Source: Ophelia neglecta (taxonomy: Eukaryota). From it: 64,000 nucleotides of DNA. The stretch lies in the NCBI GenBank assembly GCA_965285935.1, contig OZ260667.1, forward strand, positions 50,902,001 through 50,966,000, written 5' to 3'. Positions 12,083-36,200 of the stretch are shown here, one piece after another; within the stretch, counting starts at the first letter, position 1, and each line of letters starts with the position of its first letter. Under the pieces are notes generated by a model. It was not told the DNA's origin and did not search any database. It saw only the letters and a program-made list of their open reading frames with translations. The position numbers and the translations under genes are program-made.

Positions 12083-12297
12083 CTACGCAAAGAACCCCCA
12101 GACGAAAGCGGCTACGACCATCAAAATAACAGCGTTTATGTTGGCGAGTTTTCTGTGGAGGGGGACTTCATCCAAGGAGCAGTGTTTTGCTTCCATTGCC
12201 AATTGTTCCTCCTCAGTGATATCTAGCTCGGGGTGCTTCTCAATTCCACAGATCCATTGAATGGCTGTTTTGTACCATGGAAGCTTCCTCTCAGGTT
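12083..12297 (-). CDS. SLC5A last coding exon ([18 protein letters not shown]...AAFVWGFFA*)
   Basis: 215 nt, TTTCAG acceptor, TAG stop at 12085-12083. Confidence 0.93.
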
Positions 12298-15200
12298 CTG
12301 AAAGGAATCCGAAACAAACATGAACGTACAATTATCGGTTTCAAGTTATCACTCAAACAAAAAAATACCAAATTGATGTGAAAAGCCCTTTTGAGCCATG
12401 AATCTCTTTCAGTGGTTAAATCTTGGTGGTTCTTGAAGGAAGGTCCCGGGGGTAAGCAACCCCTTTAGAGGGGGACAAGGAATCAGAGCTCCGCTTTCTA
12501 TTCATAAATTGCTCATTATCAGCTTCTAGAATGAGGGGGACGGTTTTTTAACAAACCCAACCCTTTGGAAATTATATGGGTATTTAACAAAAAATATTAC
12601 ACCAAACACTAAAATGTTTGTTTCCTTATCGTACCTGGCTCTACGTTGACAGAGCTGGCCGTACGAGCCTCACTGAGATCCTGACTACCAGCGTTGTATG
12701 CCCGGTTGTCCCTGCCATTCTCTGCCATCTCCAGGCTGTTACTACCTTTTTTCGCTCTACTGTCCTCCTCAAGGTCCACGCGCTCGGCAGTGTTGTAGCG
12801 GTCAAGGTATGTCAAACGTACCAGCTAAAAAACAAAACATGCGTGTCAGACCAACGTTAAGAGCCCTTAACCAATCAGACATAATATATGTGTGTCTCCG
12901 TGGATAAACAAGGTCTCAACCAATCATATACGTGTATCATATTTGACTAAAGATAGATGATTGTTAATATATTATGTCTGGGCGTAATTTTGAATAATAA
13001 ATTTTGTTGACAGAGAAACGATAATGTTGCAACATTTTAAAATCTCTGATAAACTTTCTCATGTATACAACTTCTGCATGTATATTTGCGGTTCGCTATT
13101 TGTCATACTATGTCCTGAAATATGGGTTATATATCCGCCACGATTCTGAAGTATTTAGAAGCTTTGTACGTGGGCATATTTCAACCTAGCACATGTCATT
13201 TTGCAATTTTTTGCAACATCATCAAGGAATACAAGGGATATATGAGGTAAGCAAACTAAATAAATGCAATCCTTTCCCATGGGTTTAACGGAAGTTGAAT
13301 ATTTCTCTTTCATACTAGTAACCATTCAAGTATAAATTGTCTACGCCGGTACTTACATATTTCTCATCAATTGGTTTGGTCAATAAACTGATGACAATGG
13401 TACATATGGTTGTTATACCCCACAGGAGTATTCCAAAGTGCAGGTAGTGAACCTAGAAACAAAACATAATATCAATTAAACACTTTAAACTAACATTATA
13501 TATAAGCATTGTAAATTACAGTAGGCTTGATGAATGTATGTATTACAAAAAAAAATGTGTCGTACATGACTGTCTGGCTCAGAGTTATTCTTTGTACCAT
13601 GTTAATATATATATAGAGGGAGCTTATTCTGCAGTTTTATTTGTGTTATACTGTTACCTTAGAGATGATAGCGGGTCGCGTGTCCTCCTCGCCACAGGCC
13701 GCGGCGGGGTAGGCAGACTCCCAGGCAAACCTGACAATGCCCACCAACAGACCGATCATTAATCCCCAGAAAGCTCCCTGGAATGTACAATCAACTCAAA
13801 CGATGATAAGATGCTACAAATGCACTGTCAAGATTCAAGACAAAGAATTTGTCATAGTTGGTGACTTTAATGTTTACTGACATTTTACCTGTTCCCGATG
13901 AAGAAAATAATTAGATAATAGATAGAAGATATTATATATGCAAAATATTTCAACAACAGTATTGACCTTCTCATTGGTTCTCTTCCAGAGCACAGCCAAT
14001 AGATACACAGCACATATGGGCGGGGCTAGGAAACTGGTCACTGATTGGATGTAATGGAAGAGCTCGCTGAAGTTCTTTACGATTGGAATCCATGCGATGC
14101 CGATTCCCACCATTACCAAAACAAAAACTCTACGAAATGAAGATTAATGCAGAATCATTAGTTATTGACTTCAATACCTTCATACATAAATTATAGTTAA
14201 CTTTTAGTTAAAATTAAGATGCTGGAAAAGCCTACTTCATTTGGCCAACTTGAAGGATAGTATGTAGATTTTATTATTTGCACTACAAGTCTATTAACTG
14301 TTAGGGGGCTGGAGATTTGTGTATTGGTGTGTGTTGAGTAATGGCTGTTGGTTCCCTATGATTTCGGACTGATTTAATTGTCTGCTCTCAATAACTGATT
14401 AGGCACTGTCTGTCTGTCGTCCTCTCCCGACTTATAGCCTAGCTTTTCTCAACGAACGCTCATACAGCAGTTGCAAAAATCACCCACCTGCCAACAATCA
14501 TAATCTCTGTGTCGCTAGCGTTCTTTCTAATTCGGGTCCAGATGTCCAGAGTGAAGATGGTGGACGAGGAGTTGAAGATTGACGTCAGGGAAGACATCAG
14601 CGCCGACATCATCACGGCCAACATCAGGCCTCTGGCTCCTGAAAAACAAAGATATATATTACAATTACACTATACATTTCGGCACTATATTTAGCTCTGC
14701 ACTTTTAGGCGCTGCGCTGTTAGAGAACATTAGCATGTCCCTACCTTAACCCACGTGACAACCTGCTCGCAATGCAGAACCAAAGCAAAAGCGCCGAATC
14801 ACACCGCGCAACGCCGAATACAACACCCAAGACATGGTTGCTGTTCAAAATTACAGACAAGCAACAAGCCTCAATTTTTCAGGGGACACAATAACATAAT
14901 CCATTAATAAAAATACACGCAAACAGTAGACCTGCATTATTAGTGGGAAGGACTTCGGAGATAAACTTCTGAATTGATTGTGTTCAATTAATATAAACCG
15001 GTTATGCTAATTTGGAGATTCGGGAGTAATTTCTCTACCCCTAATTTTCAGCAGCCTCCTCCCCAGGTATAAAGAAGCTAAGGATTACAAGGTGTGTGGT
15101 TTTTCGGTCTATGAAAAATCCCGAAATTATATGGATGTAGTTATAAGTTAATTATATGTTATTAGAGAGAATGTCCACAGCTGGCTTACCAGAAGGTAGT

Positions 15201-18200
15201 AGTTCTATGACCAGCGTGGGGTAGGCAATGTTGGTACAACCAGATCTGATGCCACACACTGCATCGCAAACATCCGGTTCAGCGCACGCAATAGTATCTG
15301 TAATATAAAAACCCAAATAAAAACATGAAATTTGTTAGAATGTAATAGGCTTGTTATCAAAAATATCATACTGGAAAAATATTTCAGACTGATAAAGATG
15401 AAAATTCACTCGGGACTAAGAAAAGGTCCTTTATAATAATGCATCGAGTTTCATCTCATCTAACCTTCCCCAACCCCGAGCTGGAAATTATTTCTGGACA
15501 ATACCCCTAAAATAACTTTATCTTAGTTCGTGTTTTCCCTATGCTAGACCACAGTCCATTGTTCCATTTTAAGAGAGTTCAAGAATTTACAGAAGTGTCC
15601 GTCCACAAACCGTGGTGCCCAGCCCACGGGACCAAACTGACTCTTTACGTAGATGGCTGGGCCCCACGTGCGGCTTACGAACACGTCAGAAAAATCTAGA
15701 ACTCTCTATCCTTCTAAGTCTCGTCACCTGGGAAGAGGATTCTGCTGATCATTCCTGGTACCACAATGAGCCACATGGGCAATATTTTAAGGTATCCGGC
15801 CAGAACACATCCTCCCTTGGCGTGGGACAGATCTTTAGAGGCAAGCGCTCGCTGGACTATCACCTATACGAAACACGTAAATAGTCAAAACCGTAGTCTG
15901 ATAAACTTATAGGTCTATATGCTATCAAAAGTAGTATATTTTAATATGTGCGTACATTTGGTAGAATTAATGAATATGTATAAAATATTAATTACCAACA
16001 GAAAATGAAAACATAGCTAGTTAGATAGTAATATGGCTCATAGATATTTACATGTTGAGTACTACCCCTTAATATATGTATATAAATATATAAAGAATAC
16101 GGAATACATATAATATTTTAAGTTGGAAAATATCTTAACAATTCATCCCAAGGATATTTTTATAATAAAAACATCAGGCCACTGAATATTTACTTGTATA
16201 CAATAAGAGTTCCAGTGGCCAATGCATACACTATTTGTTGAGGTGAACTTTTAACAGAGCAAAGAAAAAATACGAAGACTAAAGTGGCCGCAAGAGAAGA
16301 AGAGGCTTGGTATCACAGCGGCCTGTAGCAACACTGATACACAGTTACTAGCGGTTAGAACCCGTGAACAACTTAATAATTCAATTGTACAGTCAGAGAA
16401 AAAAAGTTAAGAACCTCACAAATGAATGGATAGATTATAAGAAGCGGTAAAGTAAGCCTAGTCCCTAAGACATCTTACAGTGTTAAACAGCAAAGAAGTT
16501 AACTTGAGTAGGTACCCATTCCCTTAAAAAGTGCCCTCCAAAAAAAATAACCCCGTGGTAGTTAGAAAGCAGTAGACACTAGCTGTAACAGGACTAGTTT
16601 ACTTATACTTATATTAAACAAAACCAAGCTGATAAGACTCCTTTGAATTCAGAAACCGAACACTATATACTATTATACATCGATGTAGGCAGATAAAAGC
16701 AAGCAGGCATTGACATATTCACTTTTCAGGACTGCCTATATTCGGCGCTGCTTAAAAACGCTGCGATATAGTACCTAGTTATATAGACACGCCCTATGTT
16801 CTCAATCACGTGACCGGCCAATCCCACGCGAGAACAACAGTCATACAGACAGCAGTGCGCACCCAGCGTAGGTTACAATTAATTAAACCAGTCCGCTCCT
16901 GTGCTTTCATAAGACGCGTTTGTTTTACAACTCTAGTGCACCCGAGTTCCAACTAGACCCAAATAAATGGCTAGATTTACACCCCGCGTCCTTCTTATTA
17001 TGTCAAGGGCATATGGCGCCTTTCGGGGACCAAACTAGATTTTCAACAACTTGCAGCTTGTTAACCAATAAGAAAACGGTTTGGTTGAATCTAGCCGTGT
17101 TGTTTCCTTTCGAAAGTTTTTCTTTAAACTAACCCAGGGGCATGCGCTCAGACCCCTACTGAACTCTACTCGCGTTGACTGAAGTTCAACGGTGAATGGA
17201 ACACGCCCCTGGGCTGAATGCCATCTGAACCGATGAACCAACATGGCGATATTTTACGTTTCATTTTTAGGCATTTGTTGCAATAAAGACTTGTAGATTC
17301 CAAATAAGCCTTATGATATTTTAGTTACGATGTTATTTGATAGTAGTAAGAGCACCTGGTCGGTACACCAGTACCAGACTCCGGACACGGTGAGGCCGAA
17401 GATCACTCCAGGCCAGGGCAGAGCGTCGTCGACGGGCCGGAGGAGGTGGAAGGCCTGGTCTGAGGGCTTGGCGCAGTGCTCGGGCGTGCTCGAGTTCTCA
17501 GATATGGTGACAGACGCCAGGGGCCAGGCATGTTTGAGCGCCTCGTAGCCGCCCACCCGCATTGTGGCTAAAATGAGCCAACAGGGGGAGGTAATGTTTC
17601 ATTTTGTGATGTTTCATTCTATATGGCTATTCGGTGGAATCGATGTGTCTAACTTCTCTGTCACAATGATTCCTTTACGCATTACCTTGAAATCAATGTA
17701 ATCGAGATTGCGAGGACTTCAGAGTAATCTTGCTGAGGTGTTTTTGCATGCCCATGATATGGCATTGAGTATTTGTCAATGTTAACATGCAGAATATGGT
17801 GTGGGATCTTCATGCGGGTGGTACTTTGATTAATGGTGAATGGTAAATTTGATGAATTGCATTCATCTAGTGCGTCTAATTAGAGACCGAAATGTGAAAA
17901 GCATTTGATTTATTTTAAATGCGCATATTTATATGAAACAAATAATCACAAAATATCCACATCCCTATTATGGTTTCATTTCAATAAACCAGTGCATAAA
18001 CAACATCGTGTGGCAAACTTTCTTCCTGATTTGTATTTTAGCAGTTCCTGATTTGCATTTTAGCAGTTCCTGATTTGTATTTTACCAGTTCCGGGATAAT
18101 CATTAATGCCAAGTTCTAGCTGCCACCCAATGAAGGCCTATCCTTACTCGAACAAATAGAACACTAGGTACAGCTGTCTATAATAGGTTGACAACATCGA

Positions 18201-21200
18201 TGTCTTGGGAGAATACTTCAGGTCTTCCGATTGAATATGTTTCGAATTTTGCCACTGGTGTTAACTTAGCCTACACCATAATAGGCGTATTTGACCTAAT
18301 GAGTTGAGCATTATATTTATGCTGTGCGCTTTTCAGAAAGCTTGTTTGTATACATAGGCCTATATGTGCGCGAGACTGTTATATAAGCAAATATAATAGG
18401 CTACTATAGTCACAGCACACATTTGACAAAAGACAGTGCCTCCTGTCTCTCTTTCTACAGCGAGGCCAGCATATTTTCGTCAAGTATTTCTACGTACTGG
18501 TTCTCCATGAAAGCAAATTCTAACTTAATTATGCGACTGTTTATGAGGCCATCATAGCTCTTTTCAATGCTAAAGCAAAGGCCCGTTTAGCCCCCTACTT
18601 GGTCAGTGCACCAATACCAGATGCTGCTGATGGTGAGGCCGAAGACGACTCCCGTCCAAGGAAAGTCTGGGTCTGAAGCCGGACGGACCAGGTGCATGGA
18701 GCGCTCCGGGGGTATACCACAGTAGTCGGTCCACGGGTCGGGGTACGTATAATTCTGGATGGTGTAGTTAGAAGCCGCCCTCACATAGGTGTGACTAAGG
18801 TTCTCGTAGTTGCCTACCTCTATGAGGCCTTGATTTTTAGTAAGGGTTAGAAGTGAAAATTAGTGTTAGGCAAATAGATACTTGAATACTGAAGCGGGGG
18901 GGGGGGGGGGGGGGAGGGGGTAGCAATATTTTCTTTAAAAGTTCAGGTGTTCAGCAATCGAATGATGACTTTATAGTTGAAATGTTTAGTCATATTTTCC
19001 ACAGACGGGCAGTGCCAAGTTATATATCCATGAACGTTATTTTGGCAAATAAAATACGCATGCGCAGTTGAATAAAAGCACGTTAGTTTAGGCACAATTG
19101 AGCTTCCATGGTTAAGATATAGACAAGTTCAAGCAAACAAAACGTTATCAAAAAACAGGTATATAGTTATACATGCGTTAATGTTAATGGTAGGAGAGTG
19201 AAAATTAGTATTAGGCTTCCTAGCGTTAGTCAACACCTCAGCAAAACATGCATGAATCATAGGCCTATTTGTAATATATATAAACATAAATAAACACTAT
19301 AAAGAGTGAAAAGAAAAGTAAGAGAATATATTAATTTCCTTCCGATGACTGAAATAGAAAGCTCAAAGAAGAAAACCGGTTATTGAAGACCAAGTTTGGT
19401 ACACGTATGGAACCTATAGGCCTACTGTTAGAATGCCGAAGCTGAAATAACCTGAAAGCGAAGGTGTGTATCACTGGGTTAGGACAAAGAATAGCAGAAA
19501 ATAATGTTAGTTGTGAACACAAGAAAATTGAGTTTTGTATACAGGTCAATATAGTTATAAAAGCAAAAATATAGTTGGACAAAGTGTGTTAGTTAATTTG
19601 TTGGCAAGTCAACATCAGTGAAAATTGGAGAAACTTGTCACGCATAGATGTCCCCAATTTCTAAAAATGGAGAAAGCGAAGGCTACCAGTTTACTGAAGA
19701 AGTCAGAAAGGCAAAAGTAAGGCGGAAACACCAACCAATCAGACAGTGTTAGAGTTCGGACGTCCGTCCACTAGGAGGAGGCATTGGCAGTCATCCAATA
19801 ACCTAGAATGTCACACAATGAGCTCAGCCAATCACGACTGGAGTCACATAATCACCTGATCGGAGCACCAATACCAGATTGAGGAGATGGTCAAACCGAA
19901 CATGATACCGGGCCATGGCAGTCCTGGGTCTTCGGCCGATCGAAACAGGTGGAAGGAATTCCCTGGGGGCGTACCGCAATCTTTGTACGAATAGTTCTCA
20001 TATCTAGGGGCATCTGCGTTTTCTTGGTACAACCTAGTCTCGTTGGAGACGGCGCCTAAATACTTCTGTGTAACTCCTTGATAGCCGCCTACCTTCAGAA
20101 GACCTACATAAAATGGCGGACATCACAAATATCAGAAAACCATGCAGTGCATCATACAATACAATCCATTCAATTTGGTAATTTATTTGACCACGGTATA
20201 CAGATTTACAATTGTCATGATTTTCCAGATACGTTGTTAATAGTGTGCAAAGGTATATGCATGCATTAGGTCTAGTGAACAGTTCATCTATGTACAGTCA
20301 TTCTGCTCAAGAGAATGGTTCGAATTAGACATTTCTGAAGTTTTTCTAAAAGAAACAACGTTAAAAATTAACGATAGGCACTTTCGGCTGCTGCATTTAT
20401 CTTCTTTGTTTTTTTTCTCAATTGGTTTCAATCACTGGAACTAGACATTCATATAAAGTGATATACGGTCGGATTCTCTGACAGTGTTGTGAAAGAAGAA
20501 TATTATTTTGTTATATCATCTTCTGACATTAAATGAATTAAATATTTGTGTGCATCGCACAATTATTCCCTTTTCTCGTTTGTACATCAGTATAGGAGAT
20601 AAAGAGTACTACATAAAATAATAATATACTCAAGAATATCTAGGATCTCGAGAGAAAAAATGTGGTCCATTATAATGGTGTATGTGAAATGAGTGCCTCC
20701 AATAGGTGGGTTATGAGGCTCCAGGGGCTGGTCCCAGAACCCCACCCCCCTGAGTGGAGGGTGGGAATGATTGTTTCCTCCGGACGGGGTGGGGTGTTAG
20801 GGGGGGGGGAGGGTCCGGAATCAGATTCCAGCCCCTCCCCCTCCTCCGGTAGAGGAGAGACACTCATCTCACATCCTCTATACATGATTTTATACGCGAA
20901 TCTTGGGAAGAAAGGGGTTGTGACCGCCTTGTTCCCAGCATCTGCTGCCAGCCCCAGCCACCCACCACCCACCACCCTCGCCCATGAGATAATATTGGCT
21001 TACTTGCTATCATGAGGTAGATACCGCCTATCAGCATGATGACAGTCTGAATGAAATCGGTCCATATGACAGCAGTCAAACCACCTGGTAAATCACAGAC
21101 AAACACACACTATAATTACTTATATTGATATTTAAGAACAGAGACCCGAACACTTATCATAAGGGCCAACTTGACAAACAACTAGGCTCATGATTATATT

Positions 21201-24200
21201 GTCATATATCACGTTATTATACTTTTCACTTTGTTCTCTCATATTGTACGGAAAATAAAAATCATTGCATTATTACAATTTGAGATAATTCACTGGTACA
21301 CGACCAATACTTTCCTCATAGCCTATATTAATCAATATAGGTACTTAATTTCTAGTTAAAAACGCAAGACATATTAATAGCTATCAACCAGGTGGAGCCG
21401 CCAAAGGCCTGCTATATGCAGGGATATCTTGGACTTTTTGCCTTGCGCAAGGATTAAAATAGATAATTTATGAAGTTCACTTTATCTTCATTTGATTACA
21501 ATTTTATCATGCCAGGAAAAATTAATAAATCAAATATAAATAAAAATGATTGACTAAGTGTAAGTAAATGTCTTGGACTCACCAGCGATTGTAAAGAGAG
21601 CGGCGATGGCGAGGAGAAGCAGGATGGACCAGTAGAGGTTCCAGCCCACAGCGGCCTCAATAAAGACGGCGCCGGCGTATAGATCGGCCTGCAACACCGG
21701 CAAATTATTGTTCAAATACCATAAAAAACATAGGCCCTTATGCTATTGTTCAGACGTGTGCTGGTTCTCTACACACAACAATTATTCGCCACTTCAATGT
21801 TTCTTTAATAGCTGTAGATTTCTTCGGGTAAAGACTACCAATTTTTGTCATTATACATGAAAGAAAAATTCAGTTGAGTTTGAAGAAAAAAAGAGACAAC
21901 TAGACTTAAATCGTGTCACTACTTACGGATACTTTGGTGAAGATGGAAAGTAGTACGGCCAGCACAGCCAGGTAAACTCGGATTCTTTGGCCTCCAAACC
22001 GTTTTTTCATGTACTCTGGCATGGTGTACACCTAGATGGCAGAAGTAGTATACTATTAAATTTGATCATCTTTGAACCATGTATATTGAAACGCACGTGA
22101 ATACAAACCACTCTTCGAAGGGACTTTCAAATACTTATCAGATCGGGGAGGTTTTCTATATAATCAGGCTATATGTCATTAAAAATATACATTATCTTAT
22201 TCGTATAAGTGTTATGATTAAAACAATTGGTCTGAATATAGAAGTGGTCCTCAAGCAGGTTTCACTGTACACGTATATGCCTAAAAGCTGTACAGGCGAG
22301 TGTACATGTATAGGGGCCTTAAAAAGGGGTACAGGAATATGAATACAGGGCAAAGTTGATGTGAGAAATGGAAGACAATCAATTTTTTTGCGCTTCAACT
22401 GCTTACATGTGTTTCCCTTCTTTAAAGAATGCGACAAGCGTTACTTTTATAAATAAATGTGTTATAAATGTATGTCAACATTATTTGTTTTCTCGGCATC
22501 TCCCGGAAAATGGGTTGCCTCTTTCCTAGTTGTTGATAATACGTTCAACACATCTATAGCTGATATTTTTTAAATAATGCAAGTCACAGTGTCCTGTTGG
22601 TCCAATTACCAGTGTATAAATTCAATAATTAAATCACCTTTACGCAAACAACGTACGAGATGATTCGATTTTTACCAGACATTAAGTGTTTAGTATGTCC
22701 CTTAGACCGTAGTAAATTATCCCTGAGTAGTGTAATGTCACGTTCATAAACACGCTTGTCGTATGTTGTTAATTTTATTGGATGGGGAAGAAAACTAGAT
22801 CATGGCTGAGTATAGATGATAAAGTGAAAAAGATAGGATTAACTTGATGTTAAACATGGGAAAGACTAAGTTTCAGTTGATTTGAAATGTTTTCTCAGCT
22901 GAATAATGAGACATTGAACTAGGAAACATTTTTACACACAGTTAAAAGACGATTTCCTAAAAGGTGATCCCGAGACCTCAGTTTTTCCTGTAGCAATCAT
23001 TTTGTGATTTACAAAGTTCATATTAAGGTATATAGGCCTGTAATATACCTGTAATAATGTTATTAATACAATTACATTTGGTACTCACCCCGGAAGCGAT
23101 ATAGACAGGCACGAACACCCATCCCAGTATCATCAGAATAAAAATGGCCTGGAAGAAAAAACAACAACACTATGTTAAGGCTATTTCTGAATTATATGTA
23201 TGGTTTTCTCTGTATACTTATACGTTATACATATATATATATGACGATTAAAAAGTGTTTATATATAATATATATCTAGTAGTAACATAATATATATCCA
23301 GGAATGTGTTTTTGATAAGGAAAAGCAGTCTTTCGTATCTTGCTGGGTCAACCATGACACATTTGGAGCGAGGGTCATAGGTCAGCCCTTGCTGACTTCG
23401 TGTAACTGTTTGTATAAGTACTTCAACATACAAAGGAGAGATACGAGTATAGACATATATACAGTTATTTATCATGCTCCCTTCATGCCAAAAACTGCTT
23501 AACCATGTCCTCGTTTTGAATAGAACAACACCGACCTATACTGTAACACATATGTTAATCGCCAACACTGTTTTGCGGACTAGCAGAATTTTTTGTTTAC
23601 CCCCAAAAAGCCCCCGACCCCCATCCCCACCCGCCGGGCCCACACAGACCGAGTTTAAATTTACCCATACCTTTTCATCTTGAACTGTTAGCACACTTCA
23701 AATTATTTGGCTGATAACAATCAACATTACATGAAAAAAAACCATTTAGTTGGGGTAAAGTGTACCGTAAGTCGCTGACAACATAGCTGGGACTCCCACT
23801 TAATGTATATATATACATCTTCTTTAATTACATTATTAATTTATAACAGCAATCTAGTTTTTTTTAAACTTAACGCAATTTATTTGATTTGTAACCGTAT
23901 CAGATAAATTTACAGATAACTTTTCACGTATTTTCTAAAATGTTGTTTAATTGCTTTTAATTGGGCCTCAATTGATACTACAGAATAATAAGAGTCTGTG
24001 ATTTGAGACCGTTGTGACAATTCATGCCAACAGAACGTCATATCAAATATACCCAGCGTGACCCAGCTACAGTCACTGTCGGAATTTAAAATAACATCAT
24101 CTCTGTCAGAAGGTATTTTTTTGCCTTTATAAGTGGCTTCGTAATTCGAGAGAACTTAAGACAGAAGTTTTTTTTTTTATTATTATTTTTTTGTAAAGAA

Positions 24201-27200
24201 TCAATAAAGTTTCAAGGCGTGTTTATAAAATATGCTTAATTAGCCTATCCAATGAATAAGCCCAGGGTGTAGTAAGTATTTATTATGTTTCTGTCTGTCA
24301 CAGGCCTTGATATTGACTTTTTTCAAACACGGGGTCGGCAAGCTTGGGGAGGGTGTGCGATGGGTGTCTCTTTCCAAAGGGGGCCCTGGGGAATCAGCTC
24401 CTGGGTACCGGCCATCCAGGGGATCGAGGGTGTGTGGTGGCTGTCCCCTCCCGGCGGGGGAGGGGGCGTAATTTAAGATGCACGAACTGCTTGCCCTTTT
24501 ACCATGCGCGGACTAAGCCTTCGGACTGCGCGAAATAAGCCTACATGTGGACGGTATGAAAGGATGCGTGATATTATACGAGTTAGCGAACCGACTGTAA
24601 TATACTTACGTTAAGTTCAAATACGGAGATGCCTATTCCACTAGCGGCTCCCGAGCCCGCCAAACCGATAAAATGGCCGCTGCCAATGTTACTAGCGAAC
24701 AGGGAGGCACCGATCTGGAAGAATATGAAAAATGTAAATTTTAATGAGTATCTAAACGTCCTTATTGATCTCTGCTCACTCACAGCCATGACAACATTAC
24801 ATATTATAGGAACCCAAGGAACTGGAAAATACTGGTCTAATTATGAAGATGATCTGTTTCGACAGGTTAGTGTACAGGGACAGTATGCAGAATGGTCTTC
24901 ATTTAGAGGTCAGAATTGCCGGGTGGTCTTGATAACCAGGAGACCTTTAGTCAGATTTCACAGTATTAATTTTAGGAAATTAAACAGATTTATCTAGGTC
25001 AGGCATCCATATATTGTATGATTGTAAGACTGTTGACCTGAAAAATGAGCCATTGGCATTATCAACTGTCGCCATTATACCTGCAGAATGTAATCAACCA
25101 TCAGCCACCGAGTTTTGTCGAGTAGGCCACTGACAAGATATTGGTGTCAAGTAGACCACTGAAGACAAGATACTGGTGTCGAGTAGACCACTGAAAAGAT
25201 AGGGATGTCAAGTAGACCACTGAGAACAAGATAGTGGTGTCGAGTAGGCCACTGACGACAAGATAGTGGTGTCGAGTGGGCAACCGGCGACAAGATAGTG
25301 ATGTCGAGTAGGCCACTGGCGACAAAGTACTTGACAACAACGAGTAGCGTCGAGTAGGCCACTAGCTGCCGACAAGATACATGTTTACCAAGTGTTGAAA
25401 AAAAAGAAAAAATTAATATTCGACTGATGGCCATGGGCGGTTGTTACAAACTTATTTGAAGTAGGTCCAAACGTCATGGCAGGGCAGAGATAAAAAAGTG
25501 CTCAATTCGCAAGTAAATTCTTAAAATGCGCTCAGTTATCACTACCCTTGGCCCCTGCTTATTTTACTGTTTATTAGAGAGGCGTTCCTGTCAGGCAGCA
25601 CGCCAGTTATTGGCACAGTAGCTTTTGGCAGGGTATGCTAAAACTGTCTTTTTTTGTGGTCGATAACTTTGAAAAAACACGTGCTTTTATCTGATGCTAA
25701 TTGTTGACATAGGATCGACCCCCAACCGAGAAGCATGGCCTTGACAAGTAAGAAATTGATGAAGCATTTTATCTGAACTAAATTGAGAACGACTTAAAAG
25801 AAAACGATATTGGAATAAGTAAAATTATACTAAATTAAATGTAAGACGCATTTATTAGCTGATTATAATCTAAAACACGATATTTTGTTTCTCCATAAGA
25901 GCCTGTAACAGTAAACTTGTAAGTTGTGTAGAGCTAGGCCGCATATAAACTTATTTAATGCGTATGAATATTTGTATTCGATGTGAAAAGTGCCTCGGTG
26001 CTGTGTACTGGGTGAACTAGTGAACATGTTGAGCGACATTATAGACCGAGATCGTATAAGTTTGGGTCTTGTAGACAGTCATCGCCTATTTTTTGCTCTA
26101 TCTCATCAGAACTTTGTTAAAAAGAGGTTTAACCATTACAGGTATTGCGTGGATATATTTGTGGACGCCTTCTTCAGCGGAAAACATTTAAATTGTAATC
26201 CATCTATTTTCTTGACAATCAATGGTCGATATTGGTACACCCTCAGACATTATGTAACAAATGACATACTTTATAACTATAGTATTGAGTAGTTGCAGAT
26301 GGTCTGTGGACCGAAATACAGTGAAATGAAGAATCATTTATCAGTCACGTCCACGTATATATACATGAGTATGAATTTATAACATTGAAATATTTGTTGT
26401 ACTCTCCAAATATGGGGGAATAAAAGGTTAACAACAACAATGTATGTTACAACATGGCTAAGCCTTTGTGTAGTGCTAGATATTCAGTGTAACCTGTGAA
26501 TTAAGACCACCCAATCCATGGACTGGAAAATACCAGTCTGATTTGGTAGATCGCCTTCTGTACAGGGTAGTTTCATTGAACCCGAACAGTATGGTCTTCA
26601 CTTTGGTCGTCTGAATTGACGGGCGGTCTGAATATAAAGGTGGCTTTAAGGCAGGTTTCATTGTATGTTTGTTAGCTCTTTTTATATAGCATCTTCTGTG
26701 CTGTAAAAGCTGTGTTTTGCAATATCTGATTCATTTCGAAATATGACAGCTTGGTACTCAGCCATCGTGCAGTCCATTATCTACTGAACATGTTTCAGTA
26801 AGCTCGGGGATGGGGGGGGGGGGGGTCGCTGGGGGGAGCCAGAGGCAACATGAAATGTAAGCAGAGTACAACTTGACTGTGACCGTGTGATGGTTTAATC
26901 AATTAGGTCCATACCTCCGGTCTAGATATATATATATATAGAGTGTTTGGCAGGGCCACATCGAAGGAGAAATGTCTCTGCTGTTTGTGACACTGCAGAG
27001 CATTGGTCGAATTCAGTGACGATAGGCGTATTTAAAAGGTACTTAGGGGGAGGATAAATTGTAACAGCCTCCAGCCCTTGTCACTGGTAGGACACGATCT
27101 GAGTAACGTTTTGTTACTCAGATCATAAAATGGCGGACGCCAAATAAACTCTTGTTGGTAACTAGGCTTTTATCAATATTTATACAGCTTATATGATGGC

Positions 27201-30200
27201 AGTTGTTTGCTAATAGTTGTACAACAATGTCTAGATAATAGTGACACAATGTCAGAATTTATAAGAATGCATTCGGGGAGTTTTCTGCGCATGAAGATTA
27301 ACTAGGTGATCTGAGTAACAAAAAAGGAATGATCTGAGTAACGACTTTTTAAAATATCACTGCTACATTGATCAAGGTTTAATTGTCAGTTAAATCTCGC
27401 ACAATAGTAAAAAATACAGTGTAAGTGAACAGAATTTTAGTTTATATTTTTACACAAGTCCATCAAGGAACAAACTAACTAATTTGCACTAAACTGATAT
27501 CCAGGAATTTTCACAAAGGGTAGATATTCAGACCTGTACAGAGTAAAAAGAACCTGACCTAATAAATTTGTTTGAGTTGTATTTATAATGTGCAGATCAT
27601 AATCAAGTATCATATGACCATATTTTTGCAAAACTCATGCATACCAAACAAAGTCTGATTAATCCCCAACCTGGACAACCTTGTAATGGGAAATTCCCCT
27701 ATTTTAGAATTGCCTTATTTTTCACCCTCTTCAATATTTCCCCTTTACCTCAGGGTAAAATTTTCCCCTCATAATAGGGGAATTTCACCATATGTCTAGT
27801 GGGTTAATTCGGTATATCAGGTAGGGAATTTCCCCTTTTATAGAAATGTGAAATTCCCTAATTTGATCTATATGGAACTGTTGGCCTATTTGTGCAAACC
27901 TTGAACACTATTGGGACATTGACTCCAATGGTAAATTATGTTTACAGGCAGTGAAAAAGCAGGAAGTTCAGAAAGGGACTTAAGTATGGTGATCGAGTAT
28001 ATTATCATTCATTCATGAATTTGTATACATGTTATCCTGTGGAAAATGAGTCTATGTTGGATGTGCATTTTAGATGATCAGATGGGCCAGTGGGAGTAAA
28101 CTATAAGGGTGCTGATACAAAATGTAAATATCATATTTTGTCAATACATTTAGACATTGATGCCATGTACACTTGCAGGGTAGTGAGACACTCTGAGTTT
28201 ATGAGAAAGGTCCCCTGCAAAATATGTCACATTTAAAATGATAAGGTTATATAGACTATATTATTGAGCATGTTACTCTTTCCCATTTTTTTCAGTTTAA
28301 GTTCTGCACCTCCCTGGCATGTTTTGTTTACAAACCTTCACATTTTTATAAGACATGTTCTATCTTTCTGTTTTAAATTCTATTCAGTTGTATACTAGCA
28401 ATTCATTACTTGTTCTACAAATTTTAAACTCGGTTCAGGTGTATACTAGCAATTCACTGTTTGTTCTAGGAAAGGCCTGGGGAGGGGGGGGGGTTGTTAA
28501 GCAAATAAAAACAACAACAATGTGCAGGGTTGGCACACCTGTACTTTCCATTTATTAATTTTATTCCCTGCCAAATTCAGCTATATAATGTATTTTGGTG
28601 CTTTGGTAATCACAAAAATAGCACCTGGCGACTTTGTCCACACTGCCTGAAAATGTTAGAAAAGAATGCCTGGTGACATGTGGTTAAATTTGTAACTGTG
28701 CCATCAAAGAATAAGAAGTGTGCTTTCCAAATTAAATAGGGAGGGGGGGGGTCATTTACTAGGTGGGGGGAGGCTGGCATCCCCATCCCCCTTCAGAGAC
28801 CCTGCTGATTTCTGACACCCCCTCCCCCCCCCCCCCCCCATCCTCTCCACCAGGTTAAATTAGATAATGGACTGCCTATTTTTACCCACACACGCACATG
28901 CAATGCCTAACATACACTGACTGCATGAGCTTATACTGTTTGATAAATGTAGCAGTGATATTTTAAAAAGTCGTTACTCAGATCATGCCTTTTTTGTTAC
29001 TCAGATCCCCTAGCAAATCTTCATGCGCAGAAAACTCCCCAAATGCATTCTTATAAATTCTGACATTGTGTCACTATTATCTAGACATTGTTGTACAACT
29101 ATTAGCAAATGACTGCAATCATATAAGCTGTATAAATATTGATAAAAGCCTAGTTACCAACAAGAGTTAATTTGGCGTCCGCCATTTTATGATCTGAGTA
29201 ACAAAACGTTACTCAGATCGTGTCCTACCAGTGCCTTGTGTCCCGCTCACTTACACATTTGTTACGTTGTTTCTTCAAACTAACAATTCTTAAATAATTT
29301 CAAATTGAATGCACCCATAATCTGTTAAACAAGAGACATTGCGTTAAGATCTAGAGAGTGTTTTTAGTGCGTCCTATAACAGCTAATACCGCTGCTGACT
29401 AAACGACATTCGTCATTGTCTAAAGCAGAGTGAACAGTGATAGGCTATAAATTATCAATATAAGCAGGATGGTCATGAAACAGAGACAAAGTCTTGGCGT
29501 GCAGCCTACATGACAAGCATGCCGGGCTCTCTCTCCGGGACACGTGCTCGCCTCAAGTTGTCACAAGGGTAAGGGCACAAGTTAGTCGTTTTTTCACACT
29601 CGAATAATCTTTGCAATCGAATTATACCAATTAATGCAAATCAAGTGGACTTTGAAATCGGATTCAAGCTCACTTGTCCTAATCATGGCTCTATTTTCAG
29701 ATGTGATCGCACCTTGTATTCTCCCAATAAAATGTTGTCGAAATGTGGGCGAATTAACTTCAGGGAATTTATTTAGCATTAAATTGCTTTAAATTTACAT
29801 TTCATGCATATTGACACTGGGACAATGGGGTTGTTTTTTAATGGCATGACCAACTTGAATTGCAAATTAATATTATTCGAATAGATAGTTAGGTTATGAG
29901 CATAGGCTGATACTGGAGAAGGCCATTTACCCCTGTAAACTAATTCAGTCGCGGACACTTTGATCTTACAGAACATTGCGCATCGGCCTAGCTTTGATCA
30001 AGACCGGAGTCCTGGTTTAAGGACACTCCATTTCCCAATCTAATAGATTAATAATTATATTCGAGTTTAAAGAGCGCGCTTTCAACACTGCTTCTACATT
30101 GCAGATTGGTCAAGTAAACGCAGAAAGCGACGGAATTTCAAATAATTTTTTGTGCCATGCATAGCATTATACATATGGGCGTTTGGCTGTTGTTTAGAAA

Positions 30201-33200
30201 AGTTCATTATTTTGAGTAATTAACATGGATGAAGATAAATGTTCTTACTACGGAAGAAGATAACAACCATATAGATTAAACCCGCTTGACTAATCCTAAG
30301 CTGTACTCAATGTTTAGAGCTTGTTGCAAAAAAACAGGGCTCGCGTTCATATTTCGTCTTTTACACGCCAGTAACAATCTTATTCCTAAACGAAAATACA
30401 AATTCTTTCTTGACAAATTTGAAACTACTCACCAATATAAAGTTCATGTTTCTTCCCGCTAAGAAGTAGCCGCCCACACTTCCTCTGTTCTTACACGACG
30501 ACTGAAAGACAACGATGAATGAAATTATACAAACGAAACAAGGTTTATAATAGATGAAATCAATGCAACGAAAGGTGCGTGGAATAGTGTGGATTTACTG
30601 TCGAAAGCAATAAGAAAAGCTGCTGGTGAATTTAAGGGAACAAAAATGTGATCACTGCAATCATGTTGTGGGAATTAAGAACCCATGATGAGAGAACACT
30701 GGGACACAAGAAAGTTTCTTCATCCCAGGAGAACACCAGAAAACTGTCATAATTTTCTTCAAAACAACCAAATTCCTCCATCGTATTTGAACCTCTGATG
30801 GGAGACCACCCTTCATGTAAGACCGGTTATATGGTGGTCTCTCTTAGGGGTTCCGCTCTCTCTCTATATATAAGTCGTTCACTGCTTTGTTACCTTGGTG
30901 AACAATGACACCAATATTCTTAACAAAGATCCCAAAATTATTTACTTGTTCCTAATTTCTTTCTTTTTTTGTCGCCTGTTCTGAATTTTGAGTTTATTTT
31001 CTTGCCGGGGCCAGATTTAAATGTGAGGGTTTTTTGGCGAAATATGGGTTGGCTATCAAGTGGCCAGTTTTTATTATGCTATATGAATCTCATTTATTGC
31101 GCTGGGCACTCGCTTTGAGACTTAAACACTTCGTTTTCATCGCGGATGGATTTCGAGCATAAGCCGCAATGTTATATTCAAATCAAATCAAAATATTTTA
31201 TTGAGCAGTTGAGTCTGCTGATATACAAGCTATATACAATGCTCATATAATGTTGCAGATTTCTGCTTTTTATTGCCTTTTATTGAAAGAAGGCATGTGT
31301 CTTTCTTATTTTCTAGCTGATAATTTAGACCCGAGCGGACCTTTCTTTTTTACATAAGCCCCATTTACCTTTACACCATTAACCGCTGGCCCTTTTTTCA
31401 TTTAAAAGTATTTGTGAACCAAGAATTAAACAATTGGCACCTTAGGAAAATATTATGCATTTGTACGGGTTTATTATAGTAACTTAACATAAGAATAGCA
31501 ATACTACAACGGATGGACCATGTGAGAACAACTTAATTTTCTATATCCATGTATAAAAACCTAACTTGTTTCAAAAGTATTCTCCCCCCCCCCCCTTCCC
31601 CCATTAGGCTACTGCATTGTGCATTCCTAAACGCGTACACGGGGCAATGTCTACCCCATATGGGACTTTTATGGCGTCCTCTCTATACCTAGACCTACTT
31701 ATTAAAGTCGAGAGGATGATCTACGGGTACTCAGTGCATGGTTCGATTGTAAACTGGCTCTCGAAGATCGAAGTCTATGTCAAGTATTGCCGGGGGTAGG
31801 TTTCGATAAGTCTAATGTTAAATGCTCAATTTTCAATTTTGGGACCTTTCAGTTTATAACTGATAGTACACACACGTGAAGTTCAGGCTTGCACTTCTTC
31901 CCGCATGTAACAATCACTGGCCATGAACACACCTCCACCGCAAACCACTTTGATTTCGATACAACGGTTTTATTTGAAAAAAGATAACGATAATCAACTA
32001 AAAAAAACGGGAGTGGATACCCGGCAGATATAATAAAATCATTTATCAAGAATAGTCGATTAAATCTGATATAAACAGGAACCATCATTGACAGGCCCGC
32101 ATACATCACTCCGCAATGTGAAGTACATGGTTATGTGCTACTAGCAGGGATACCCGTGAAACAGTGTTAGTTTTGCAACACAATTTTCATAACATCTTTC
32201 ATCAAAGCACCCCGCCTTCCCCACCCTCATTTGATGCCACGCTTCTCATTCCTGTTAATTATCTTGTGATTTGGCGCCTCCCCCCCCCCCTCCCCCCCCC
32301 ACACACACTGACTGGGCTTTTAGCCCTTGGCAAGTATTGGCCCAGAGGCAAATTTATTTTCGTATTCAGAATGTCTTTAATTCGGAGACGATCTATTAAA
32401 TACAGGTGAGAACACCATTGTGGCCTAACATGCCGAGATTCTGTCCTCATCCAAGTGCCATTTATCCCCGTCCATTATGCCGAAAATCTTTTCATCATTC
32501 TCTGGAAGTGTTTGGAAGTTGTTAATAGCGGAAATATGACACCTGGCAAAGGGGCACTGGAAAACCAGATGTACTTGCGTCGTCCCCTAACGATCTACAT
32601 TATAATATTTACTGTCGTATCACGTGATTAAAATGGTCGATGTCTTCAGCAGTGAATTCGACTCATAACAACCCACCAAAAAAGGGGTAAATATGAGGTA
32701 GGGTAAGGTTTAGGGTGGGGGTTAATAGGACCTAGGATAGTGTCACGGTCTTCAAGGGCCGTGATCTTTTGGAGTCGAATTCATCTGTTGTGCTGTCCCA
32801 GTCCCCCAAAATGCGATTTTTATACTAGTCAATAATCTGGTTTCCCAGTCCTTCATATTAATGTTCTACTGCTCACAATTGGCGGAACATACCCAGAAAA
32901 TCCCCCCCCCCCCCCCGGACATCCGCTAAGTTTTGCTGGCTATATAAGGGGGCACTATATGAAGTTATCCTGGCTATATAAGGGGGCACGAATGGATGCG
33001 GACGGTGTCCTCTAAATATACAAGCTGGTCCGGAGGGGGTCTTGAGGGTGGGTGGTGGGAGGGTTGGGGGGGGGGGAGGCGGAGGTCGTTTATCTTCCAG
33101 ACAGCCCTCTAGGGACAACCCTTTTGCTGATCAACCAAGTGAAAGCTGCAGACCATCTTTATTTTAATACCGCAAAACGCGCCCTTGACCCCCCCCCCCC

Positions 33201-36200
33201 CCCCCCAGGACCCCTTCCACGGGGATATGACCATATATATACATATATGTCTAGTCATTAAAATTTGTGTGGAACTTGCATGCAAAAAGTCCATTACATA
33301 TTATGTTGTTTACTTATTTCGAGCTTTATAACAGCTTTTCGAAGCTGCAGTTTGAAAATTTTCGGTCGCTCCAGGTATACCTTGGAGGAGAAAAGAGAGC
33401 CAAGCTGACATGTAATGTTGAATCCTTGCCAGCAAGCCCGCCAAACATGCCAATGGCATTCGAACACGGAATAGACCGTATAGTTATGTTATTCAATCCG
33501 AGAAAGAAAGCATACTAAGGACACATGGCCATGCCATTATCATAAACAGAGAAAACAACGCATAGCAGGTTACAATCAGGTTAATTTATACACTCGTCAA
33601 GTCAAAAGCTTTGTTCAAGGCAAAACAGCGCCATAACTTGTCCGTATATAGATATATAGCCAATGCGTGTAATACTTCATAGATTTATTTTTATTCTTAG
33701 ATATATGGATACTTCCGACTCAGAATTATACGATGGCGTTACATTACCCGATTTTATTTTATAGCTTTTAATTTTAATGATGTCTGCATATTATCTTCAT
33801 TTTTTATCTATATAAATACACTGTCGCGCCAGACTGTGTTCAAAATAGAAGAAGAATACTACTTTGTCTTTTTCGAGAGCCGTAATGACATTCCTGTATA
33901 TAGGACATGAACATGACCTGCCCAGACGACTTTTTTTTCATTGCCACTTAGTGAGGCAGGTCGTTTATGGGTAAATCATAAGTAGGTCACCATGAAGCAC
34001 CTCAGCTAACCTTTAAGCATTCCGCAGTGGGTAAAAAGCCTTGATAGCTAACCCCGTGGATTAAACATTACATTACACCATGTATCCCTCCCTCCCCCCC
34101 CCCCCCCCCGCTTCTTCTTACAGGCGTCTCTAAGTACAGTGGAGGCCGTGTCAGCCCCCACCCACCCCCTCTCTGTCCCTCTCTCTTAATTATTTTTCTT
34201 TCCTTTTTTGTTCTTCTATAATATAATTTACTCATTGTTCTCCGAAAACGACTCCTGGATGTGTTCGGCGGGTGTCCCCTCCCAATTAAGAGTCTATAGG
34301 ATAATTCCCCAGACCCTCATTGTGGAGTTCCCCCCCCCCCCCCCCCACTCGAGGGGCATGTATAACAACATGCCCGGATGACCATCTAGGTTTTAGAACT
34401 TATTACATATGATCATTTCTGTACATAGGAATCGGTATGGTTATTGTATTGAGGAAATATATGCCTTTTTAAGAATACATGATTATACAAGTTTGGGATT
34501 TATAAAACAATTGTAAGTGCACAGTGCCGAACTTTTTAAATTTATAATGTTGTGTGTTTTAGCGCACAATAGCGATATATGACATCTCTAAGTTCATAAA
34601 ATAATTAATTCGATCATAAATCTGGTGATAGTTCACAGCAGACTGCTCTTTTCTACAGTTTTATGTCTTCGTTTACCGGATACAGGTTGTGCTTGTTTAC
34701 CTGGTACGGTTCAGTCGGAGGTCACACCACTTGACCCTGAATAGGCGCATCAAAAGTGTGCACGGGGCCAGTCAATCTGGGGCGTACACCTTCTACCTGC
34801 CTGAACGGATCTCGTATTTGTCCAAAAGCAGAGGTTGGTTTCGTCCCCCCCCCCCCCCTACCACCACCACCACCCACCCTACACACACAGACCCTCACCG
34901 CCCCGCCCCCTCCCTCTCTATAATATACCATTGAGCTAGACGGGGTTTATATATATCTATAGATGACCGCGACCTTAAGTTAGTTACCTGTGTATTGAAA
35001 AGACTGAATTCTCGTGCAAGCGCGAGGTATATAAACAGGTGTGAAAAGTGAAGCTTGTTGACTAGTTTGCTCAAGATGTTTGCCACACAGCGATGTTAAC
35101 AAGTTAAAGTAAATTTACATAGGTTTTATGAACGTACTTGGAGGTGTAACCTAGGTCACAGTAACCGTGTACAATAAAATAAAAAAGTTGTGTAATAAAT
35201 ATACATTTAGCTCCTGTTTTAAATGACTATCAGTTTAAAGATTTTTGCACAAAAGTTGTATTAAAATCGTTGGCGTTTTGTTACCTACATTTTTTGGATA
35301 AAATAAACACGCTTTTTAAAGGCTCTATAAAAATATAGGCAATTTGCCCACTATCAAGAATAACACGTATAAGACATTGTCAACTTAAAAGGAAAGTTTA
35401 TAAGGTGCTGTATTGTCAATATGAAGCTTGGCTTTAGGGGAAAATCGTGTGCAAAAGGTTAAAGGTTAGGCAATCGGTCGATTTATTAGAGGAAAAGAGC
35501 TGAACATCGGCCCTGATATTAAGCATGCCGTGATTTGTGATTTGAGTGTTCTTGTCCCATCCTGGCATTGCCCTTTGGGCATTCCGCACATTCATAATTA
35601 AGTGTTAAAATATGTTAAAACTATTCTCAAAACGCTAGTTGGCCAAGAGCCACGAGACAACCGAAAATTGCAGCATTTCAGGAGACCTAAAGAATTTATG
35701 GTAATACGTGCAAATCAAGAAATGGTATCTAGTACGCTGGCTGTCGGGAGTAGGGTGGGGGAGGGGGCGGCTCTCATGTCTCCCTTATTAGCTTACACTT
35801 ATAAGATGGCATAGCTATTTTCATATAATGGACCCCCCCCCCCCTCCATCCCCTCCACTTACCCCCTACCCCGCCCAGTGCCTCCCAGCTCCTCGTCAAG
35901 ATTAACTGGCTATTCTTGCCTGCTTTACTATAGGACTGGGGTCATGCAGGTAAAGAGGAAAAATGCCTCACGCAACGAGTACTTTTGAGAGATAGTTGAC
36001 CAAACTAGATAGCCACATTAGTATAAAAATTGGAAGCTACTGATAATGTCATTAGTAAAATATATAAAGCGAACTTGATTATGCAGAATTTGATTCATAA
36101 ACAAGTCTCTGTGTTACAGAATGCGTCCTCTTAAAAGAAGTTATCATATATACCCTGTACATGAGTGGAGGATCCATAGGCCTATATTATTGTCGAATAG

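Follow-up and report, generated by a model that had tools for sequence, protein, structure and literature searches.

Three tandem copies of a TM6-coding exon in a protostome SGLT-type symporter gene: probable alternative exons, one of them with a Ser-to-Gly change in the predicted sugar pocket

The A, B and F variants of NKCC2 differ in ion affinity and in their location along the nephron, and CAT-2A and CAT-2B, the two forms of SLC7A2, a gene of another family than the one considered here, are a classic case of mutually exclusive exons that change the substrate affinity of a transporter. Here we describe an SLC5/SGLT-like gene of Ophelia neglecta (Eukaryota), which lies in a stretch of 64,000 nucleotides (nt) that we call the window (GenBank assembly GCA_965285935.1, contig OZ260667.1, positions 50,902,001 to 50,966,000 of the forward strand). 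On the minus strand of the window, which contains zero N, coding exon 8 of this gene is present as three intact tandem copies, 8a, 8b and 8c. We suggest that these are three old copies of an exon for the extracellular loop between transmembrane helices 5 and 6 (TM5 and TM6) and for TM6 itself, spliced one at a time in a protostome SGLT-type symporter, which would give three isoforms identical outside exon 8. The exon anatomy, the frame logic, purifying selection on the copies, the placement of the residues that differ and an annotated exon swap in a relative are established. That the three copies are spliced one at a time, with 8c retuning the sugar pocket, is as a whole a proposal to which we give an even chance.

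The position that attracts attention is residue 287. T287, Y290 and W291 are located on TM6 inside the sugar site (PMC5699082), and in the structure of human SGLT1 (hSGLT1) with LX2761 the side chains of T287 and W291 are described as interacting with the C4 hydroxyl of the sugar, with M283 and L286 lining the C5 substituent (PMC9616851). For human SGLT2 (hSGLT2), the discussion of one study has S287 hydrogen-bonding the fluorine at C4 of 4FDG and links the low affinity of hSGLT3 for this compound to its A287; the same study names L283 and S287, in place of the Met and Thr of SGLT1, as pocket differences between the two proteins (PMC12322204). Replacement of T287 of hSGLT1 by Asn, the residue of the Vibrio galactose symporter, is reported to reverse the preference of the transporter (galactose 68 mM versus glucose 230 mM; PMC11061222).

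Searching the chains of the PDB with phmmer, we found that all three copies match human SGLT1 (7wmv, 7sl8, 7sla) and SGLT2 (7vsi, 8hb0) with E values of 1e-10 to 1e-15, and the helix of each aligns to the SGLT1 and SGLT2 chains without gaps, its last residue being Q295. Because the alignment of the helix to 7wmv and 7vsi is ungapped, position 287 is read directly as Ser in 8a (TCA, 19880-19882), Ser in 8b (AGC, 18623-18625) and Gly in 8c (GGA, 17380-17382). An earlier reading of this DNA made from its letters alone (the sequence-only reading) had placed Ser/Ser/Gly at the equivalent of SGLT1 Thr287; the alignment bears this out, so the variable residue does not fall outside the pocket, and the three helix peptides given in that reading match the sequence exactly. 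The variation that it had named at this position for SGLT1, SGLT2 and SGLT4 is likewise found in the sequences compared: the hSGLT1 chain (7wmv) has M283 and T287, the hSGLT2 chain (7vsi) has L283, S287 and G288, and an Anolis protein named SGLT4 has Ala at 287. Along the helix the three copies share Leu283, Thr284, Ser286 and Tyr290-Trp291; in the order 8a/8b/8c they read Ile/Ile/Val at 285, the same at 288, and Ser/Thr/Thr at 293. The helix codons occupy 19856-19915 in 8a, 18599-18658 in 8b and 17356-17415 in 8c, and the span 17356-19915 thus runs from the 3' end of 8c up to the first helix codon of 8a.

An isoform with 8c would therefore differ from one with 8a by Gly in place of Ser287 and by Val in place of both Ile285 and Ile288, and the hydroxyl that contacts the C4 substituent of the sugar in human SGLT1 and SGLT2 would be gone. 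Without this hydroxyl, isoforms with 8c are predicted to differ in their affinity for sugar or in their selectivity between epimers, and the side-chain sizes (I285V, S287G, I288V) suggest that the 8c pocket may be roomier. The remainder of the binding site appears to be common to all three isoforms. The sugar-coordinating set N78, H83, E102, Y290, W291, K321 and Q457 is conserved in full, and alignment to 7wmv confirms the expectation of the sequence-only reading that N78, H83, E102, K321 and Q457 have conserved equivalents in the constant exons; these exons also keep the equivalents of F101, F453, Y455 and T460, and carry Leu for W103 and His for D454. The Na2-site residues A76, I79, A389, S392 and S393 (hSGLT1 numbering; the residue list comes from section 7 of PMC12322204, where it is given in hSGLT2 numbering) are conserved in exons 3 and 11.

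The architecture of the array argues for alternative use of the copies. All three have an AG acceptor and a GT donor, share a common phase and have lengths that equal 2 mod 3; the first two bases of each finish the codon opened by the last base of exon 7, and each ends on a codon boundary. The boundaries of 8a read tatgtag/GT..CAG/gtgatt. The introns measure 1027 nt between 8a and 8b and 1031 nt between 8b and 8c. If a second copy follows a first, its shifted phase brings a stop within three codons in 8a and 8b and near the end in 8c, and skipping all of 8a, 8b and 8c leads to a stop in exon 9; therefore, the frame is kept only by transcripts with exactly one copy. We regard mutually exclusive use of 8a, 8b and 8c as highly probable.

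The copies are old and have evolved under constraint. Their amino-acid identity to one another is 45-58%, their synonymous divergence (dS) of 1.2-1.5 is saturated, their flanking introns can no longer be aligned, and the detectable direct DNA repeat is confined to the 65 nt that code for the helix (repeat family D1). The ratio of nonsynonymous to synonymous divergence (dN/dS), estimated roughly from pairs of copies over 69-71 codons, is 0.25-0.42, and for the helix part it is 0.12-0.19. The codons of Ser286-Ser287 are TCC TCA in 8a (19880-19885) and AGC AGC in 8b (18623-18628), and that the serine codon class has changed at both positions points to selection that has long kept Ser there.

The coordinates of these features are collected in Table 1. 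The gene was mapped exon by exon by tblastn with database orthologues (Fasciola, turbot SGLT1, Lingula and Lamellibrachia).

Table 1. Coding features of the SLC5/SGLT-like gene, in positions of the window (slashes mark exon boundaries; residue equivalents are in hSGLT1 numbering)
Feature	Positions	Strand	Length	Remarks
Exon 8a	19856-20103	-	248 nt	62-residue extracellular loop and TM6 helix
Exon 8b	18599-18828	-	230 nt	56-residue loop and helix
Exon 8c	17356-17567	-	212 nt	50-residue loop and helix
Constant exon 7	21004-21084	-	81 nt	Ends in phase 1 (..GCA A/gtaagc) and gives the first base of the junction codon
Constant exon 9	15728-15863	-	136 nt	Starts in phase 0 (tatag/GTG ATA GTC = VIV); K321 equivalent
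Constant exon 3	24610-24714	-		N78, H83, F101 and E102 equivalents; Pfam PF00474 match
Constant exon 12	13967-14131	-		F453, Y455, Q457 and T460 equivalents, D454 = His; Pfam PF00474 match
Whole SLC5/SGLT-like gene	12086..40496 (approx.)	-		About 16 coding exons; last exon 12086-12298

Several repeats were noted in and around the array. A perfect 13-nt inverted pair (17730-17742 and 19232-19244) flanks exon 8b and could loop it out; a rough calculation gives about 0.2 as the chance expectation for such pairs in 5.1 kb. Two G/C-rich, low-complexity arms of 22 nt, one within 8c (17437-17458) and the other in the intron between exon 7 and 8a (20828-20849), are 86% complementary, which could be either chance or a pairing of docking/selector type. 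In the 8b-8c intron a 22-nt unit (TTCCTGATTTGTATTTTAGCAG-like) is repeated three times head to tail (18023-18092), and each copy has an acceptor-like TTTTAG motif.

The exon triplication is peculiar to this gene within its own genome. A six-frame search of the genome with 8a recovers 8b with an E value of 5e-17 and 8c with 2e-12. In the 762-Mb assembly, 8a finds 17 exon-8-like matches (25 candidates scored), three of them at this locus, and exon 9 finds 20 matches, one of them at this locus. Every one of the 14 exon-8-like matches elsewhere has one exon-9 match 300-1600 nt downstream, and only this gene shows a ratio of 3:1; given their 1:1 pairing, the others are therefore ordinary paralogues, some of them in tandem gene arrays. 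Two such SLC5 arrays lie at C9:41244628-41268862 (three genes) and C9:22577931-22597753 (two genes), with a single exon 8 and a single exon 9 per gene. Three public DNA runs, all from one sample, yield contigs over this region, and one of these contigs (16420-21200) includes 8a, 8b and 8c. A long G run between 8a and 8b (18886-18928) is a point at which short-read contigs break.

The same exchange is annotated in another species. In the nemertean Tubulanus polymorphus, the RefSeq isoforms X1 (XP_074640671.1) and X2 (XP_074640673.1) of a gene named sodium/glucose cotransporter 4-like are identical outside one block of 68 alignment columns, which is the exon-8 homologue; one of the isoform blocks reads ..GVIFGLTISSVWYWC.. 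The helices of the two isoforms, ..GLTISSV.. and ..GLTVSGV.., differ at three positions only, and the change from Ile285/Ser287 to Val285/Gly287 equals that from 8a or 8b to 8c. The Tubulanus gene is of orthologous type and resembles ours in swapping the exon-8 homologue, but it is annotated with two versions, in predicted RefSeq models, whereas three exon copies are present here.

Traces of similar arrays are found in further lineages. A UniParc open reading frame (ORF) of the brachiopod Lingula (P0001) runs on through two tandem copies with 22 residues between them, with Ser and then Ala at 287, and its first copy is identical to the exon used by isoforms X1 and X2 of Lingula anatina. The gene model of the crab Chionoecetes opilio (P0243) has two copies in a row, both read in frame, ..ISGI.. 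followed by ..IGST.. (Gly and Ser at 287). Among other decapods, a Portunus protein labeled isoform X2 has the second type, and Cherax, Procambarus and Scylla have the first; each type forms a starred multi-species clade. Alternative copies thus differ at 287 in all four lineages in which they were seen, with only 3-6 helix differences per pair, a recurrence that we take as suggestive, no more. No clean exon-8 swap was found in isoform pairs other than that of Tubulanus among those compared (seven pairs, then six pairs that included Tubulanus again): the Physella pair differs by a 4-residue indel, that of Babylonia at the N-terminus, and three Haliotis rufescens pairs in many blocks. The Haliotis isoforms X1-X3 (P0290-P0292), whose differing blocks extend over half the protein, look like chimeric models across tandem paralogues. 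The Aplysia models (P0006/P0154) end in the intron after the 8a-type exon, and the public gene models of Chionoecetes, Lingula and Aplysia mishandle the exon-8 array. The difference between Lingula anatina X1 and X2 (P0195, P0185) is confined to a homologous block of about 135 columns at the C-terminus, which constitutes a second alternative region; a second C-terminal exon set of this kind was sought in the window and not found, a single set (12086-12298) being present. One protein with two identical copies (P0049) looks like an assembly or annotation artefact and was rejected.

Comparison with orthologues identifies 8a as clearly the canonical version, nearest to the exon of annelid and mollusc orthologues: against the siboglinid annelid Lamellibrachia its identity is 60-64%, that of 8b and 8c about 46%, and that of the constant exons 75-92%. 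We built a tree of 65 exon-8 segments from which columns 285-288 had been taken out. Here a starred clade (99/87) unites 8c with five fragments of other origin that share its one-residue-shorter linker and carry Ala, Gly, Cys, Ala and Ser at 287, and 8b takes no supported position. In approximately unbiased (AU) tests, monophyly of 8a, 8b and 8c was not rejected (p 0.197 with 158 rows, p 0.119 with 65 rows), nor was a grouping of the Tubulanus Gly exon with 8c (p 0.144), which was named after the tree had been seen.

Judged by its residues, the gene is an SGLT-type SSF symporter. Five of the five constant exons tested match Pfam PF00474 (SSF) above the cut-off (27-59 bits versus 22.8); none of the three exon-8 copies does so at E<=0.01, because the region is variable across the family. 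In a tree of exon 8 only, Tupaia SGLT2, Anolis SGLT4 and frog SMIT2 belong, together with other genes of annelids (Capitella_b, Owenia) and echinoderms, to a starred clade that excludes 8a-8c; the gene is therefore probably not an orthologue of vertebrate SGLT1 or SGLT2, for which so short an alignment is weak evidence. An HMMER scan with 8a returned 759 proteins at E<=0.001, the best being short single-exon ORFs with 55-62% identity and none identical. A word-based search with 8b gave six fragments (45-58% identity) and no clear orthologue, and the same search with 8c gave zero candidates. The search for orthologues with the Fasciola protein covered the best 120 of 7987 matches, and named isoforms were then obtained through cluster look-ups. 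A bacterial repeat protein of 1592 residues with six matched stretches (P0149) was set aside as a low-complexity false lead.

Several observations weigh against a retuned pocket. Copies 8a and 8b are equal at 283-288 and 290-291, and only 8c alters a pocket-lining residue; therefore, the claim of the sequence-only reading that exon choice retunes substrate selectivity or affinity is only partly supported. The contact of residue 287 with C4, the effect of T287N and the Tubulanus switch speak for it where 8c is concerned, and the choice between 8a and 8b leaves the pocket as it is. In a published hSGLT1 mutant, T287C, the kinetics are nearly unchanged (K0.5 1.4 versus 0.9 mM), so a small-residue swap at 287 may have a small effect. 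All four hSGLT2 mutants containing S287T are reported as inactive (PMC12322204), and that study could therefore not assign selectivity to 287 and is uninformative on this point; moreover, section 7 of its Results gives W291, not S287, as the hydrogen-bond partner of the C4 fluorine. Gly287 is also an ordinary natural variant: among 123 related segments with the helix motif, position 287 is Ser in 74, Ala in 32, Gly in 12, Asn in 2 and Cys, Asp and Thr in one each, and among 141 full-length relatives it is Ser in 84, Ala in 41, Gly in 9 and Asn in 7. The substrate labels attached to the clade (SGLT4-like, sodium:myo-inositol cotransporter) are similarity-based names only. Finally, the tree does not separate an inherited from a convergent Ser/Gly pair (AU p 0.12-0.20); either origin argues that the difference matters. 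Balancing these points, we place a transport difference caused by residue 287 close to an even chance and, if anything, a little short of it.

One rival explanation concerns the loop. Divergence between the copies is mostly there, and what separates 8a from 8b is confined to the lid and vestibule. The part preceding the helix varies in length (Table 1); N-glycosylation sequons number two in 8a (NET, NYS), three in 8b (NLS, NYT, NYT) and one in 8c (NSS); and the single Cys of each copy, at the C255 position, is conserved. Within the part that aligns to residues 268-275 of hSGLT1, position 274 is Phe in 8b and Leu in 8a and 8c; residue 277 of 8b is Thr, and the R267-P275 linker of 8c is one residue shorter. 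This shorter linker was rejected as a clean marker, because 12 of 139 segments have it, among them a clade of distant paralogues. An 8b isoform would combine the sugar-contact residues of 8a with another loop, one additional sequon (three against two) and a vestibule in which Leu274 is replaced by Phe. The exons could accordingly be mutually exclusive with their functional difference in the extracellular loop or outer vestibule, and Ser/Gly at 287 nearly neutral: loop length, sequons and residues 268-274 could affect lid gating, trafficking, stability, or the access of inhibitors and partners. In hSGLT1, D268H is reported to shift the inhibition constant of dapagliflozin about 13-fold (PMC6286348, Table 1), and L274 is given in published work as an inhibitor contact; this is the position occupied by Phe in 8b, and the low inter-copy identity and the neutrality of T287C point the same way. 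However, the change from I-S-S to V-S-G recurs letter for letter between the Tubulanus isoforms, whose helices are otherwise nearly the same, residue 287 differs between copies in each of the four lineages, and T287N does alter selectivity. We consider a purely loop-based difference a serious contender, though a doubtful one.

Two other explanations deny any difference in transport. The isoforms could be functionally equivalent, the copies being kept for tissue- or stage-specific control of splicing and dividing expression between them; but copies retained for regulation only need not keep distinct, conserved protein differences, and 8c-type exons from several sources make up a supported clade of their own in which a one-residue deletion is shared, which makes functional equivalence improbable in our view. 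Alternatively, 8b, 8c or both could be unused relics of exon duplication, with 8a alone spliced in. Such a history would fit the clearly canonical character of 8a, the weak, purine-rich acceptor tract and CAA/gtaggg donor of 8b, and a variant of the sequenced sample (17427 C>T on the plus strand) that changes Asp to Asn in the 8c loop. It would also fit the kind of data at hand: the public runs that cover the stretch are DNA only, and their contigs are without joints. Yet neither 8b nor 8c has lost its open frame (70-76 codons), its splice sites, the loop Cys or any invariant residue of the helix; dN/dS is well below 1 although dS is saturated, both variants in 8b (18659 and 18662) are synonymous, and the Tubulanus annotation uses the Gly-type exon. 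Relic status therefore appears very improbable to us. All three copies are probably used in this species, and the swap may change transport.

A more general reading would extend one-at-a-time splicing with a retuned 8c pocket to protostome SGLT-type genes as a group: an ancient or repeatedly re-invented splice switch, at the position that senses the C4 hydroxyl of the sugar, between Ser287 and Gly/Ala287 forms of different hexose (epimer) or polyol selectivity, to which this genome adds a third version that alters only the extracellular lid. We hold this extension to be unlikely on present evidence. If it were true, the protostome splice switch would achieve by exon choice what vertebrates do with separate SGLT1, 2, 3 and 4 genes. 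Few pocket positions vary between SGLT paralogues that prefer different sugars, and residue 287 is among them; 8a, 8b and 8c, together with Tubulanus X1 and X2, are natural, evolution-tested chimeras for the role of residues 285-288 and of the TM5-TM6 lid in selectivity.

Retuning of a transporter helix by mutually exclusive tandem exons has precedents, and public annotation already shows the Tubulanus swap; the present gene would add a sugar symporter to the transporters diversified in this way. Full-text literature searches, which did not extend to the supplementary gene lists of exon surveys (PMC9741552, PMC8373072, PMC5740500, PMC4165533), where an SLC5 entry is possible, turned up no description of such exons, alternative or duplicated, for an SLC5/SGLT gene; in the main text of the first of these surveys, SLC5 occurs zero times. 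The nearest described system is SLC12A1 (NKCC2) with its A, B and F versions: both genes encode a cation-coupled transporter and have three tandem versions of the exon that builds a pathway-lining helix, mutually exclusive in SLC12A1 (PMC9741552) and probably so here. The two differ in that SLC12A1 belongs to the CCC family, has another fold and tunes ion binding, whereas our gene encodes a LeuT-fold member of the SSS family whose substrate is predicted to be sugar, and in that the NKCC2 isoforms have been shown experimentally, whereas those proposed here are known from genomic sequence alone. With regard to residue 287 itself, the closest parallel is found in the vertebrate SGLT paralogues, which have Thr in SGLT1, Ser in SGLT2, Ala in SGLT3 and Ala in lizard SGLT4, that is, small residues at the same pocket position that are linked to C4 recognition. 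Vertebrates vary this residue between separate genes, whereas the gene described here and that of Tubulanus would vary it within one gene, by the choice of exon.

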